The notes below the pieces were generated by a model, which saw only the letters and a program-made list of their open reading frames with translations, made no database searches and was not told the origin of the DNA. Shown piece by piece: positions 5,879 through 23,745 of a DNA stretch of 64,000 bases. How positions within the stretch are numbered: position 1 is the stretch's first letter; each line of letters opens with the position of its first letter. The stretch is taken from sequence record PV037725.1. One strand, given 5' to 3'. The position numbers and the translations under genes are program-made.

Positions 5879-6127
5879 ATGAAACTGATTAAAGCGCTCT
5901 TCATCTGTATAAATGGCCTATTGACCTTTCTGATCTTTGGTTCGATGTGGTTAACCCTGACGGCAGCGACCAACATGTATCGCGCTGGTGTTTGCTTCTC
6001 ATACCAGTGCACGCCTACGTTTGGTGGTACGGTTATGATGTTGATCGCAACTGGTGTTGTGTTTGCCATGCAGATCGGTGGTATCTGTTTGCTGGTTAGC
6101 AACATCAAGAAGATCTACAAGCATTAA
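5879..6127 (+). CDS. membrane protein (2 TM)
   Basis: AGGAG RBS, ATG at 5879; two hydrophobic helices. Confidence 0.7.
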   Translation: MKLIKALFICINGLLTFLIFGSMWLTLTAATNMYRAGVCFSYQCTPTFGGTVMMLIATGVVFAMQIGGICLLVSNIKKIYKH

Positions 6128-6144
6128 CGTAAAAGAATACGCGT

Positions 6145-6160
6145 TGTGCAATAGTATAGG
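6145..6160 (+). promoter_or_regulatory. putative late-type promoter
   Basis: TGTGCAATAGTATAGG resembles TGTGTAATACTATGTA upstream of the tRNA units. Confidence 0.45.
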
Positions 6161-6605
6161 ACACACGTGTTCTCCCATGATCGTTCGTCTTCTCTGACAC
6201 CCCACCCAATGATCATGGGCTCCCTATTCAGGATCATTGCTCAGGCAGTGAACCTAAAAGAACAGGGGTTCGCAGGGGCTATCTCTCTAACCAGGGTCCC
6301 CGTCACCATAAGCAGTAGGTTAGATGCCCTGCTCGAACCCCGCCTAAGCATAATGAACTTTCGGTATAGTGAAGCGTTCCCCCTTATTGACGGGAACGGC
6401 AAACCCATTAGGGTAGTAGGGGTCAACCAAGCCTCTGAACCGAAGCGCTGTGCCTCTGACTGGTACTCATTGGGATGGCGAAGTTATTGACGAAATACGG
6501 TGACTCCAGATCGAGCGCCCTATTAGAAGATAGCGACTGACAAAGTGATACCTCCTGAACTACGGGTGGTTGAGCTGGCCAGCACACAGTTGTCAGATTA
6601 AACCC
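6158..6605 (+). ncRNA. candidate large structured ncRNA A (~450 nt)
   Basis: No credible ORF; many perfect helices (6174-82/6211-19, 6265-72/6334-41, 6375-81/6392-98, 6537-43/6590-96) and loop-to-distal complementarities; flanked by promoter-like motif and terminator. Confidence 0.65.
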
Positions 6606-6607
6606 CA

Positions 6608-6638
6608 AGTCCCCTGCCGATGGCGGGGGGCTTTATTT
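6608..6638 (+). terminator. intrinsic terminator
   Basis: AGTCCCCTGCC-GAT-GGCGGGGGGCT followed by TTATTT. Confidence 0.7.
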
Positions 6639-6655
6639 CGTCTCAAGGAGTTTGT

Positions 6656-7102
6656 ATGAAAGTAATTAAAGAAGGTTCAGTGTATCTGGTTCATTCCGCG
6701 AGTGAGGTAGTAGCTGCCTGTCGTGCGTCTGTGCCGAGTCACGCATTGGATTATACCAATGACCAAATGTTCATGGAAGAAGCCGTATACGGTGACAAGG
6801 AGCTTCCTAAGACGTATCCGTACGTATTGGTCTGTAACTTTATCGACGATTCATGCTTTGCGCATATCGATGTCTACGGTATCTCCGCCGAACACTTCGA
6901 GAACCGTGGTGAAGGGGCTAAGGAACATTTGTTCCATTTCAATATTCGTCGAACTCAAAGCGCCTCACCTTATGCCGTCAGAGATTCCGCCTACCAAATG
7001 CCTGGTCGTGATATCCTCGAAGCCACGCTTAAAGTAGGTCAAACCTTCCATCGTGATGAAGAGTACGATCTGGAAATCCTCAACTGGAAACTGGTGCACT
7101 AA
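6656..7102 (+). CDS. hypothetical protein
   Basis: AAGGAG RBS, ATG at 6656; PKTYPY motif shared with next gene. Confidence 0.75.
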   Translation: MKVIKEGSVYLVHSASEVVAACRASVPSHALDYTNDQMFMEEAVYGDKELPKTYPYVLVCNFIDDSCFAHIDVYGISAEHFENRGEGAKEHLFHFNIRRTQSASPYAVRDSAYQMPGRDILEATLKVGQTFHRDEEYDLEILNWKLVH

Positions 7103-7623: not shown

Positions 7624-8322
7624 ATGACCATTTTTATTTGTGACGGTGAACACCTGTTAATGGATAAAGTCACCTTGCTTGAATATAAGCCTGGTGACTA
7701 TAACCTCAAGGCTCCCCCGAAAGGGGAGTTAGGTGGGCACTATGAGAACAAATCCAAGCTGACGCTGTTGGACCCTGAAAAGAGCGCTATGTCTTGGGGC
7801 GTGGGTATCAAGTTGTTTACCGGTGTGGGTACGATCGACCCTACGTGGGATAAGATCATGTACACCACTGGCGTCGACCTTCAGCATATTTTCACTGCCG
7901 ATATTTATTGGAAGTTCCTGAATCGAGATATGCGTTTAATCTGGCTAGATGCCGAGGATACCCTAAACCAGATTTACTTCGATGATACTGCACAGGTAAT
8001 GCGTGCCACTGAAGCTAAACAGGCCAAATATAAAGCAGGTCATCTGACCATCGAGGGTTATAACGCTGATGAGATTGTCGCATTCCAGCAAACGAACAAC
8101 GTTAAGTTGACGGCATTGGAAGCGATGGTATTCTCACAAACCCTTACCAATCGATTGGGGCGTCGTTTCGACTACTACCATATCCCTACTGGGAAGATCA
8201 AGTATGACTGCGACCTCAGTGATCGGCAGCGTGACATGATCATGGACAAAATCGAAGGGCGCATGAAGTTGGCTCGGCGTTATGAGTCGGTGTACTTACT
8301 GAATACCGCCGACGGAAAATAA
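7624..8322 (+). CDS. Ntn-hydrolase/HslV-like protein (divergent)
   Basis: AAGGAG RBS; begins M-T-I-F-I-C-D-G-x-x-L-x-x-D, like T-I-x-x-DG-x-x-LAAD Ntn proteins. Confidence 0.4.
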   Translation: MTIFICDGEHLLMDKVTLLEYKPGDYNLKAPPKGELGGHYENKSKLTLLDPEKSAMSWGVGIKLFTGVGTIDPTWDKIMYTTGVDLQHIFTADIYWKFLNRDMRLIWLDAEDTLNQIYFDDTAQVMRATEAKQAKYKAGHLTIEGYNADEIVAFQQTNNVKLTALEAMVFSQTLTNRLGRRFDYYHIPTGKIKYDCDLSDRQRDMIMDKIEGRMKLARRYESVYLLNTADGK

Positions 8323-13119: not shown

Positions 13120-13204
13120 TGGTGCCGGGAGCGGGGGTCGAACCCGCATGACCTTCGTCGGCGGATTTTAAGTCCGCTGCGTCTACCACTTTCACCATCC
13201 CGGC
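13120..13204 (-). tRNA. trnL: tRNA-Leu (TAA)
   Basis: Cloverleaf with long variable arm, anticodon arm GCGGA-CTTAAAA-TCCGC, GTTCGAC T-loop, encoded CCA. Confidence 0.95.
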
Positions 13205-13488
13205 GTTGTGTGCTGAGCGAACTCAGCACGACGGACTACACTGGTCCGTTGCAGCCCATGATACCTTGGGGAAGGGTGCTCTAAGATCATCAAGCGGATG
13301 GACCTAGAACCTGCATCGTCAGGCGTTCAGTCTATCAGGGTGCGGGTCAGCGATTTCCTCTAGGCTACTCTATTCCGATGTGTCGAGTAGATTCAACAAG
13401 GTCTATAGTTTAATCCACTATTCTGCAATCTTCGACCCAAGTTTGGGGGATTGGGGACAGGTTTCATGGACGAGTGTATTTCTACACA
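13205..13488 (-). ncRNA. candidate structured ncRNA B (~285 nt) upstream of tRNA-Leu
   Basis: GTGTA-GAAA-TACAC 5' hairpin; GTGCTGAG-TTCG-CTCAGCAC 3' hairpin; long-range 5'/3' helices; TATG at start; no credible ORF. Confidence 0.65.
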
Positions 13489-13507
13489 TACTATCTACAT
13501 CTGGGTA

Positions 13508-14083
13508 TTACTTTACCAAGTCGCCCCAGCGTGGATCGAATCCAATCAATTCTTCCCGTGTGAGTTCTCGGAGGCGCCATGCTTGAACTGTATCGTGCTT
13601 AATGGTGTCATCATATCCGGAGAACATGTAACCACCACGTCGATGTACAGCTTTGTCAATACCGATTTCAGCTTCTTCACCTGTTTGAATCAACACTGCG
13701 GACCGTTGAGTCTGACGGAAGCTACTGCGTTTAAGCCCCATTACCCGAAGTGGTGCGGATTCATAGTGTTTATGAATCTCAATAGCCGCAGGTAGTAACC
13801 GACGCAGCTCAAAAATGTAGCTATCGATTACATCCATCTTGTCAAGTTCGGCCAGCAATTCTTCTGGAAATGCGTAGAAGCCTTCATATGGGTGGCCACC
13901 TACATCGACTAGAAATCCAGTGGGTTCCAATCGAGCGTAAAAGTCATCATACGTAATACACTCTTTAAAGTGGTAGTCTGTAACACTATCAGGGTGCGCT
14001 GTGACTGTGATAGTCAGATCACCTTTGGTGAGTGTAATTGGGCCATTTTTATCAATGTAGCGACGTACAGTTATATGTTGCAT
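13508..14083 (-). CDS. hypothetical protein
   Basis: AAGG RBS; 191 aa. Confidence 0.7.
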   Translation of the reverse strand: MQHITVRRYIDKNGPITLTKGDLTITVTAHPDSVTDYHFKECITYDDFYARLEPTGFLVDVGGHPYEGFYAFPEELLAELDKMDVIDSYIFELRRLLPAAIEIHKHYESAPLRVMGLKRSSFRQTQRSAVLIQTGEEAEIGIDKAVHRRGGYMFSGYDDTIKHDTVQAWRLRELTREELIGFDPRWGDLVK

Positions 14084-16702: not shown

Positions 16703-16790
16703 TGGAGGTAAGAAAGAGATTTGAACTCTTGGGGCTATTACACCCTCTGGTTTTCAAGACCAGCGCATTAAGCCACTCTGCCACCTTACC
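16703..16790 (-). tRNA. trnS: tRNA-Ser (TGA)
   Basis: Anticodon arm CTGGT-CTTGAAA-ACCAG, long variable arm, encoded CCA. Confidence 0.95.
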
Positions 16791-17796: not shown

Positions 17797-17872
17797 TGGC
17801 TCCAGGACCGTGACTCGAACACGGGACAAACACGTTAACAGCGTGCTGCTCTACCAACTGAGCTATCCTGGA
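17797..17872 (-). tRNA. trnN: tRNA-Asn (GTT)
   Basis: 76-nt cloverleaf, GCACG-CTGTTAA-CGTGT, encoded CCA. Confidence 0.95.
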
Positions 17873-17878
17873 ATAATT

Positions 17879-17962
17879 TGGTGGTTGGAGAAGGATTCGA
17901 ACCTTCGAAGAATCAACAAGGGATTTACAGTCCCCCGGCTTTGACCACTTACCTACCCAACC
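17879..17962 (-). tRNA. trnY: tRNA-Tyr (GTA)
   Basis: GGGGA-CTGTAAA-TCCCT, long variable arm, encoded CCA. Confidence 0.95.
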
Positions 17963-23669: not shown

Positions 23670-23745
23670 CACGTAGTAAAAACTGTGGTGTACTGTTAGC
23701 GCAGTATACCACTCTACATATTATTGCAGTCCGAGTATTTCTTTT

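Follow-up and report, generated by a model that had tools for sequence, protein, structure and literature searches.

A previously uncatalogued family of structured RNAs predicted in phiKZ-like jumbo phages of Pseudomonas

The locus in phage Viktualia

This work concerns a stretch of 64 kb from Pseudomonas phage Viktualia (PV037725.1, 322,655 bp, host P. syringae), called "the window" hereafter, whose coordinates are those of the PV037725.1 record minus 62,000, and in particular a unit on its + strand, at 6129-6640, which consists of a phage-type promoter, an RNA of ~480 nucleotides (nt), and a phage-type intrinsic terminator. By megablast, the region is 100% identical to Viktualia. Viktualia is related to 201phi2-1, a nucleus-forming jumbo phage, and comparison of sequences indicates that its stand-alone RNA belongs to an RNA family, not catalogued before, which the phiKZ-like nucleus-forming Pseudomonas jumbo phages share. 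A preliminary description, made from the letters of the window alone, had placed here a self-contained, highly structured non-coding RNA between a promoter-like block (6145-6160) and an intrinsic terminator (6607-6633 plus a T-rich tail); both signals are present, and the picture of a self-contained, highly structured RNA was upheld, at a length of ~480 nt. The coordinates of the features are collected in Table 1.

The promoter has the layout GTAAAAGAATAC-N4-TGTGCAATAGTATAGG at 6129-6160, with TGTGCAATAGTATAGG occupying 6145-6160, and follows a pattern of an A-rich block, TAC(T/G), N13, and TAT(A/G), the spacer holding a conserved GYAAT. Its three blocks and the TAC-N13-TAT spacing are kept upstream of every homologue, and the window has 3 copies of the pattern AATAC-N14-TATR, where 1.08 would be expected, and 2 of a stricter motif, where 0.05 would be. 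Transcription is predicted to start at ~6158-6159 from the rule T(-3)ATG(+1) published for the late starts of the phiKZ non-virion RNA polymerase (nvRNAP) promoters (PMC7598289). According to PMC11512511, conservation in early promoters is seen at -10, -20, and -30, and middle promoters carry a TACT ~22 nt upstream, with an A-rich repeat before the TACT (PMC8244752); the promoter of the RNA, as judged from its letters, agrees with what has been published in words on early and on middle phiKZ-type promoters alike, and, although the preliminary description spoke of an early operon, we lean towards a middle-type (nvRNAP) promoter. Besides the RNA promoter, there are copies of AATAC-N14-TATG at 13487-13509 (-), ~280 nt upstream of tRNA-Leu, which is a middle-promoter gene in 201phi2-1 (PMC11512511), and at 23717-23739 (-), reading ATAAAAGAAATACTCGGACTGCAATAATATGTAG, which could head another transcript.

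The terminator is a hairpin at 6607-6633 followed by the T-rich tail TATTTCGTCT, and it agrees with the published phiKZ terminator consensus (PMC10914365). Its tail motif, GSYTTTATKYYGY, has 10 copies in the window against 0.07 expected. The ribosome-binding site and the ATG (6656) of the next gene come after this terminator and, at the level of sequence, an own promoter and an own terminator accompany the RNA in its homologues.

Table 1. Features of the RNA unit in the window and copies of its terminator tail motif
Feature	Position	Strand	Remarks
Phage-specific promoter	6129..6158	+	GTAAAAGAATAC 6129-6140, TGTGCAAT 6145-6152, TATAGG 6155-6160
H1, 5'-terminal hairpin GGACA/TGTTC	6159..6172	+	91% paired, 2 compensatory pairs
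H2, long hairpin CCCATGAT/ATCATGGG, variable loop	6174..6219	+	95.7% paired, 2 compensatory pairs
H3, CATTGC-TCAG-GCAGTG	6235..6250	+	100% paired; U:A<->A:U and wobble exchanges
Conserved core P1-P2-P3-P4	6263..6346	+	R1 111.5 bits
Core P1	6265-6271/6335-6341	+	GGGGUUC/GAACCCC
Core P2	6272-6277/6327-6332	+	GCAGGG/CCCUGC; UC bulge 6333-6334
Core internal loop, 8-nt/2-nt	6281-6285 (invariant AUCUC)	+	
Core P3	6286-6292/6318-6324	+	TCTAACC/GGTTAGA
Core P4	6295-6297/6305-6307	+	GGU/ACC
Core terminal loop	6298-6304	+	CCCCGUC; family form YNCCCGUC, 7-8 nt
Core 3' tail	6341-6346	+	CGCCUA
Multi-helix junction closed by H7 (TTTCGGT/ACCGAAG)	6359..6445	+	H7 nearly invariant
H8, CGTTCCC/GGGAACG	6375-6398	+	Inside H7; sequence variable among homologues
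Small hairpin inside H7	~6403-6414	+	
H9, inside H7	6417-6437	+	6/7 pairs compensatory
H10, CGCTGT/ATGGCG, conserved loop with UGACUGGUAC	6446..6480	+	95% paired, 4/6 pairs compensatory
H11, GTTATT/GATAGC, around a lineage-variable hairpin	6483..6534	+	94-98% paired
H12, CTGAC/GTCAG, encloses H13-H15	6537..6596	+	
H13	6545-6547/6585-6587	+	
H14	6550-6557/6563-6570	+	
H15, hairpin bearing the invariant palindrome GCTGGCCAGC	6574-6583 (palindrome)	+	
Intrinsic terminator, phage-wide class GGCUUUAUKYYGY	6607..6641	+	12-bp stem, 8 G-C pairs
Terminator tail motif, copies	6629, 9398(-), 12519, 13083(-), 21545(-), 26323(-), 30822, 49756, 57445, 62797	As given	

Evidence for a conserved fold

Folded as a single sequence, the RNA reached -169.7 kcal/mol against -154.4 +/- 6.5 kcal/mol for its shuffles (z = -2.36, with 0 of 100 shuffles as good), which is only modestly better, and therefore the case rests on the comparison with relatives. 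The sole other near-identical DNA found by blast in the phage collection was a 147-nt block of 201phi2-1, 93% identical, within an unannotated 450-bp gap between gp424 and gp425, and a further, short copy was detected by blastn in phage Phabio. Scans of IMG/VR with exact patterns for the loop and for the 3' palindrome gave four more full-length relatives (contigs L018, L078, L116, and L126), together with copies of 201phi2-1 (L106) and of Phabio (L055), and a pattern scan of metagenomes gave one true copy among 9 hits (contig L133).

The seven full-length RNAs were aligned with plain MAFFT, an alignment fitted to no structure, and folded with RNAalifold, which proposed 105 pairs, 35 of them with compensatory changes. 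Once the terminator and some pairs of doubtful standing had been taken out, 13 helices with 85 pairs were left, with 95.0% paired and 31 of the pairs compensatory. When the 3' partners were slid by 1-3 columns as a control, 35-42% were paired and at most 7 pairs were compensatory; over all alignments, these slid controls gave 27-58% paired versus 95-98% of the cells in the real helices. Covariation among syntenic phiKZ-like homologues is abundant in each part that was compared, with compensatory changes in 31 of 85 pairs over the full length, in 17 of 20 pairs of the core, and in 18 of 27 pairs of the 3' domain. The eight nested helices of the preliminary description all lie where it had drawn them, and the homologues support them. 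More specifically for the strand, the full-length alignment has two U-G pairs, at columns 225:316 and 356:405, which are invariant in 7 of 7 sequences each and would be C-A mismatches on the other strand; therefore, it is the + strand RNA which is the folded molecule, as the direction of the promoter and of the terminator also implies. Altogether, we put the probability that this structured non-coding RNA family is real at about 0.9.

The part common to the whole family is a coaxial hairpin of 75-85 nt, named here the core, with its outer stems in Viktualia formed by GGGGTTCGCAGGG and CCCTGC..CGAACCCC (6265-6341). The copy of Phabio consists of only ~85 nt of RNA, matching window positions 6263-6346, with the terminator directly after it. 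In 8 sequences the core is 98.1% paired (9 of 20 pairs compensatory), and in the 18 sequences aligned with a covariance model of the core, named R1 and run with default filters, it is 97.8% paired. The small helix P4 covaries across 8 stem variants (GGU/ACC, GGU/GCC, GGC/GCC, GCG/CGC, GCAAG/CUUGU, GCU/AGC, UACC/GGUA, and CACC/GGUG), with no clear P4 in the copies L161 and L159. Given that P4 is a covarying helix, the letters that never change are all single-stranded, and the core thus displays three invariant pyrimidine-rich single-stranded elements, namely AUCUC, the CCCGUC of the terminal loop, and the CCUA of the tail after P1.

On the 5' side of the core, H1 takes the form GGAGUG-AAUG-CUCC in relatives, and H2 belongs to a 5' domain limited to the 201phi2-1/Viktualia lineage. 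On the 3' side, H7 encloses the same hairpins in 7 of 7 homologues when each is folded independently to its minimum energy, despite the unrelated sequences of these hairpins, and a hairpin stands at the position of H8 in each of the seven. In H11, GTTATT (6483-6488) pairs with AGATAGC (6528), with a U:A<->C:G covariation at one pair in 7 of 7 sequences. The palindrome of H15, GCUGGCCAGC (6574-6583), is invariant in the 201-like group, and it is altered yet self-complementary in PhiPA3 (CACUGGCCAGUG) and in HPP-Temi (AGCUGGCCGGCU). A second covariance model, R2, built for the 3' domain, recovers this domain in PA1C and HPP-Temi, and in 9 sequences the domain is 91.7% paired. With default filters, R2 did not recover the 3' domain of PhiPA3, which MAFFT misaligned across lineages, and the PhiPA3 domain is therefore supported by inspection only.

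One claim on the architecture did not hold. The RNA had been described as multi-pseudoknotted on the grounds that three loops have distal complements; these complements do exist in Viktualia, but they are not conserved in the homologues, where the three long-range pairings are only 60.3% paired, a value reached by 70 of 500 shuffles, with no excess of covariation. Furthermore, the "GTCACC" loop of the second proposed pseudoknot uses bases of the local 3-bp P4 (GGU and ACC), and the third is explained away because AGATAGC (6528) belongs to the covarying H11.

Distribution and size forms of the family

R1 finds the core, in one copy each, in 22 of 22 related loci searched, a set that comprises phiKZ, PhiPA3, PA1C, HPP-Temi, Phabio, 201phi2-1, D6, RVTF4, IMG/VR contigs, and one metagenome contig. 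For phiKZ, PhiPA3, and PA1C, searched in their syntenic regions, the E-values are 1e-5 to 1e-7, and the phiKZ copy, of ~120 nt, lies between PHIKZ288 and PHIKZ289 (NC_004629, ~263,160-263,290); the copies of 201phi2-1 and PhiPA3 are at ~287,056-287,529 and ~291,098-291,488 of their genomes. R1 was also positive in 8 of 8 further IMG/VR jumbo-phage loci chosen solely for their gp287-family neighbour. Within the 64-kb window, R1 finds a single core copy, and neither R1 nor a pattern search found further copies of the RNA there.

Three size forms can be told apart. Mini forms of ~120 nt, present in phiKZ, Phabio, D6, RVTF4, and most IMG/VR lineages, have the order promoter, 10-25 nt, core, 10-14 nt, and terminator, and they are without the palindrome. 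Medium forms of ~370 nt, in PhiPA3, PA1C, and HPP-Temi, join the core to the 3' domain, and large forms of 457-482 nt, in 201phi2-1 (~470 nt), Viktualia, and relatives, have the core flanked by a 5' domain (H1-H3) and by the 3' domain. At 2483-2830 of L159, a 307-kb IMG/VR jumbo-phage contig, the core is followed by another 3' extension of ~330 nt, without the GCUGGCCAGC palindrome, and then by a terminator.

As to the neighbourhood, the core lies 1.7-3.2 kb downstream of a gp287-family gene (PHROG 15052) among the loci with flanks, and no relative of this neighbouring gene was found in bacterial genome contigs. The core is also found upstream of gp289-family genes. The first downstream gene is gp425-like in 201phi2-1 and Phabio, gp426-like in Viktualia, gp289-like directly in phiKZ, PhiPA3, and PA1C, and a small membrane protein in D6, RVTF4, and relatives, so that no single functional class of downstream gene goes with the RNA across lineages. 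In Viktualia, the gp289-family protein (PHROG 25842) is encoded at 7624-8322 (+), with the conserved N-terminus MT-[IY]-x-[IV]-x-DG; in most lineages its gene comes after the RNA, directly or 1-2 genes on, and tblastn found no gp289-family match in 201phi2-1 and Phabio. Just upstream of the RNA promoter, at 5879-6127 (+), an 82-aa hydrophobic small protein is encoded, and a similar small membrane ORF (open reading frame) precedes the Phabio copy; the small membrane ORFs 3' of the RNA in D6, RVTF4, and relatives are unrelated to this 82-aa protein.

Possible functions of the RNA

We suggest that the RNA would accumulate as a discrete stable transcript and act in trans, with the invariant core loops as a docking site for a partner. 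Stems that change freely around fixed loop letters, on a stiff stacked hairpin, would be expected of such a site. This partner would more probably be a protein than a purine-rich RNA, given that the stems drift, the loop letters are fixed, and no conserved complementary RNA was found in rRNA or in the window. The accessory domains of the large forms could stabilise or scaffold the RNA, and the palindromic hairpin GCUGGCCAGC may let two molecules pair. In favour of an action in trans, the first downstream gene differs between lineages, and in the large forms the core is set apart from the terminator by >250 nt of conserved structure; we regard an action in trans through the loops as having close to, and at most, an even chance.

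Several points weigh against these proposals. The discrete stable transcript is predicted from sequence, and the binding partner of the core is still hypothetical. Every genome has the RNA and its terminator placed directly after a promoter and ahead of an operon's first gene, an arrangement that would suit a cis-acting leader just as well. That the palindrome serves for dimerisation is a conjecture, and its bases also form a hairpin of 3-4 bp. With regard to the family itself, the core and 3'-domain alignments were fitted to their models, the full-length alignment being the one that was not, and the homologues are kin, so that shuffle controls overstate significance, which is why we take the slid controls as the fairer yardstick.

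The strongest alternative, possible though clearly less probable to us than an action in trans, is that the RNA is a cis-acting leader, in which the promoter-proximal core sets the transcription past its own or later terminators into the operon, either as a protein- or ligand-responsive attenuator or by a processive antitermination, similar to that of put or EAR, on the phage RNA polymerase. The order of promoter, core, terminator, ribosome-binding site, and first gene is the same in all genomes, with no second promoter motif visible, and in the commonest form, the mini form, the terminator follows 10-14 nt after the sensor-like core; ~260 nt intervene in Viktualia. The operon has a gp289-family gene in phiKZ, PhiPA3, PA1C, D6, RVTF4, and several IMG/VR contigs. 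Many short RNAs derived from 5' untranslated regions (5'UTRs) by premature termination were reported in phiKZ-type phages (PMC10914365), and antitermination was suggested for 201phi2-1 (PMC11512511). However, inspection of the mini sequences, with no dedicated computation, showed no conserved antiterminator pairing between core and terminator, and the terminator is the generic phage-wide one. The first downstream gene varies besides, tblastn having given no gp289-family match in 201phi2-1 and Phabio, and the large forms insert at least 250 nt of covarying structure plus a palindrome, which a simple attenuator would not need.

A more ambitious version of the action in trans, which we consider unlikely but worth stating, would make the core the RNA subunit of an unrecognised ribonucleoprotein common to the nucleus-forming jumbo phages of Pseudomonas, acting as a decoy or as a regulator and binding a protein of the host or the phage via AUCUC and CCCGUC; in the 201phi2-1/Viktualia lineage, the RNA would have grown to a scaffold of ~480 nt paired with itself through GCUGGCCAGC. 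If this were true, the RNA would be a counterpart, small and amenable to genetics, of the self-assembling ROOL and GOLLD RNAs.

An RNA partner was also considered, namely that the loop region GGGUCCCCGUCA pairs with positions 921-932 of the 16S rRNA (the 5' strand of helix 28) in the nascent rRNA, thus disturbing the assembly of the 30S subunit. With E. coli 16S 921-932, the loops of the Viktualia type and of Phabio can build an unbroken duplex of 12 pairs, including one G-U, which is also the best duplex in the rRNA operon for these loops, at -27 to -29 kcal/mol. However, shuffled loops match this length in 21 of 200 trials and this energy in 12 of 200, the loops of phiKZ, PhiPA3, PA1C, and L126 have their best sites elsewhere, P4 takes up the GGU and the ACC, leaving 7-8 nt unpaired, and the comparison was made on E. 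coli and not on Pseudomonas rRNA. Given that shuffles do as well in about 10% of trials, that the other loops differ, and that P4 sequesters the bases, this pairing is unsupported and, in our opinion, highly improbable. No loop-complementary site was found in the 64-kb window either.

Searches for known RNA families

The absence of a known family, as claimed in the preliminary description, was borne out by Rfam 15, which includes GOLLD, ROOL, HEARO, OLE, 6S, group I/II introns, and self-cleaving ribozymes: searched with the Viktualia, phiKZ, and L162 copies, it gave nothing at the gathering score, and at E <= 10 nothing beyond the weak matches described below. The only gathering-level matches in the window are 4 tRNAs, away from the RNA, which are phage genes on the - strand: Leu(UAA) at 13120-13204, Ser(UGA) at 16703-16790, Asn(GUU) at 17797-17872, and Tyr(GUA) at 17879-17962. 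ARAGORN found 0 tRNA or tmRNA genes in 6000-6800. The best Rfam match inside the RNA reached 19.3 bits against a threshold of 44.5 (DUF2693-FD, E = 0.21); it covers 6381-6422, within a variable hairpin specific to Viktualia, and is most likely a chance match, the other weak matches being driven by the terminator.

The suggestion of a ribozyme-like RNA, self-cleaving or other, fared poorly as well. In its favour are unpaired nucleotides that never vary, set in a clear-cut fold, and the size and elaboration of the Viktualia form; on the other side, no Rfam 15 ribozyme model matched, even at E <= 10, the universal part is a simple nested hairpin of 75-85 nt without a supported pseudoknot, and the ornate structure is mostly lineage-specific, so we hold a ribozyme to be very improbable.

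A few other candidates were rejected. A self-splicing intron is contradicted by the flanks, which are separate complete genes with homologues of their own, and no intron model matched. The loop can pair over 6-7 bp with the G-rich strand of its own terminator in Viktualia and several relatives, but inspection showed that this is absent in L018, phiKZ, D6, and RVTF4, and the complementarity arises because the generic terminators are G-rich. The likeness of CCCGUC and AUCUC to the post-terminator motif UUAUKCCGUCUC amounts to only ~4 shared bases, and is an idea rather than a finding. Over 10 nt, H3 resembles the type I-F CRISPR repeat of Pseudomonas read as its reverse complement, but this is the wrong strand, and H3 varies among homologues. 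The boxA-like string CUCUCUAACCA of Viktualia is a coincidence, since its bases form the covarying 5' strand of P3.

Coding potential and annotation

That the stretch contains no credible ORF was confirmed by the homologues. A 107-aa ORF at 6167-6490 is intact in Viktualia, and the GenBank depositors called two coding sequences here, CDS0139 (record 68209-68490 = window 6209-6490) and CDS0140 (window 6570-6659), which might speak for a protein-coding gene. However, this ORF is open in Viktualia only: each + frame of the homologues holds 6-15 stops, in 201phi2-1 no + frame stays free of stops for more than 46 codons, tblastn matches jump between frames, and the pairwise alignment shows indels of 1, 10, and 14 nt. 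There is no match to a Pfam or PHROG family, and the substitutions keep base pairs and not codons, which leaves a protein-coding gene next to no chance.

Given that the ORF is neither conserved nor matched by a family, CDS0139 and CDS0140 are likely spurious. The same is probably true of the three small coding sequences CDS0041-0043 of HPP-Temi, which overlap its RNA copy (L148 1018-1861), and of the N-terminal extension of 201phi2-1 gp425, all of which overlap the RNA or its terminator. The annotated start of gp425 (MRQIKPQAPTLVGGGFIPSQGET...) reads through the terminator (L002 4346-4414), and the true start is probably MSLYD.

Published transcripts and significance

Neither this locus nor this family is described in the main texts of the literature on the phiKZ and 201phi2-1 transcriptomes, on Grad-seq, on ChmC eCLIP, and on antisense oligomers, or in the recent reviews examined. 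By means of ONT-cappable-seq and Grad-seq, "5'UTR-derived" or intergenic non-coding RNA candidates were reported in phiKZ and 201phi2-1 (PMC10914365, PMC11512511, and PMC8545117), and they are alike in being short transcripts driven by phage promoters, with a phage-type terminator just upstream of an ORF, and conserved in related jumbo phages. By its sequence, the phiKZ copy of ~120 nt would look like one of these "5'UTR-derived" candidates, and it may be among the 17 unnamed ones of Putzeys et al. The candidates that the main texts do name lie elsewhere, namely upstream of PHIKZ221, PHIKZ302, gp182/gp277, and p40, and 3' of PHIKZ298. The 201phi2-1 study screened only transcripts of <250 nt (PMC11512511), and the 201phi2-1 copy is of ~470 nt. 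Therefore the transcript was possibly glimpsed before; what seems to be new is the family, along with its fold, invariant motifs, and distribution.

Work on the phage nucleus, on dual phage-encoded RNA polymerases, and on how DNA-targeting defences are evaded takes the phiKZ-like phages as its model, and the RNA biology of these phages is almost unexplored. Here, a family with a precise fold and three invariant loop motifs has a copy in each of the phiKZ-like Pseudomonas phages examined, at one constant locus, and its natural size variants (~120, 370, and 480 nt) are a ready-made deletion series. In this way, the general statement that these phages make some short RNAs becomes a testable object: seven or eight loop bases, an action in cis or in trans, and a partner. 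In addition, the annotation is corrected for Viktualia, HPP-Temi, and 201phi2-1 gp425.

Comparison with known systems

Short, invariant, C-rich loop motifs on a small RNA ended by a terminator are also found in RsaE/RoxS. These are small RNAs of the Firmicutes whose C-rich loop motifs target G-rich ribosome-binding sites; in contrast, no conserved target was found for the jumbo-phage RNA in rRNA and the window.

The HK022 put RNA and the Bacillus EAR element are cis-acting RNA antiterminators, compact stem-loops that come right after a promoter and ahead of terminators or genes. The RNA described here likewise places a compact stem-loop after a promoter and before a terminator and the genes of an operon; however, put and EAR act on the host RNA polymerase, the jumbo phages considered here use polymerases of their own, and the likeness is one of layout, with no similarity apparent.

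Another phage-encoded structured RNA with its own promoter is the pRNA of phi29, which multimerises through intermolecular base-pairing. It differs from the Viktualia RNA in that there is no homology and no link to a packaging gene, and the mini forms of the present family are without the palindrome.

The GOLLD and ROOL RNAs are, like the Viktualia RNA, large, multi-helix, often phage-borne, and of unknown function, although this comparison is an analogy only. Recent cryo-EM (cryogenic electron microscopy) work has shown that GOLLD and ROOL self-assemble into multimers, and the palindromic hairpin of the Viktualia RNA hints, by analogy, at self-pairing. Their covariance models do not match the Viktualia RNA, which is smaller (~480 nt), and the family presented here has no universal part but the core of 75-85 nt and occurs in one phage group only. 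In summary, this is a new family within a known kind, that of the phage-encoded structured RNAs of unknown function.

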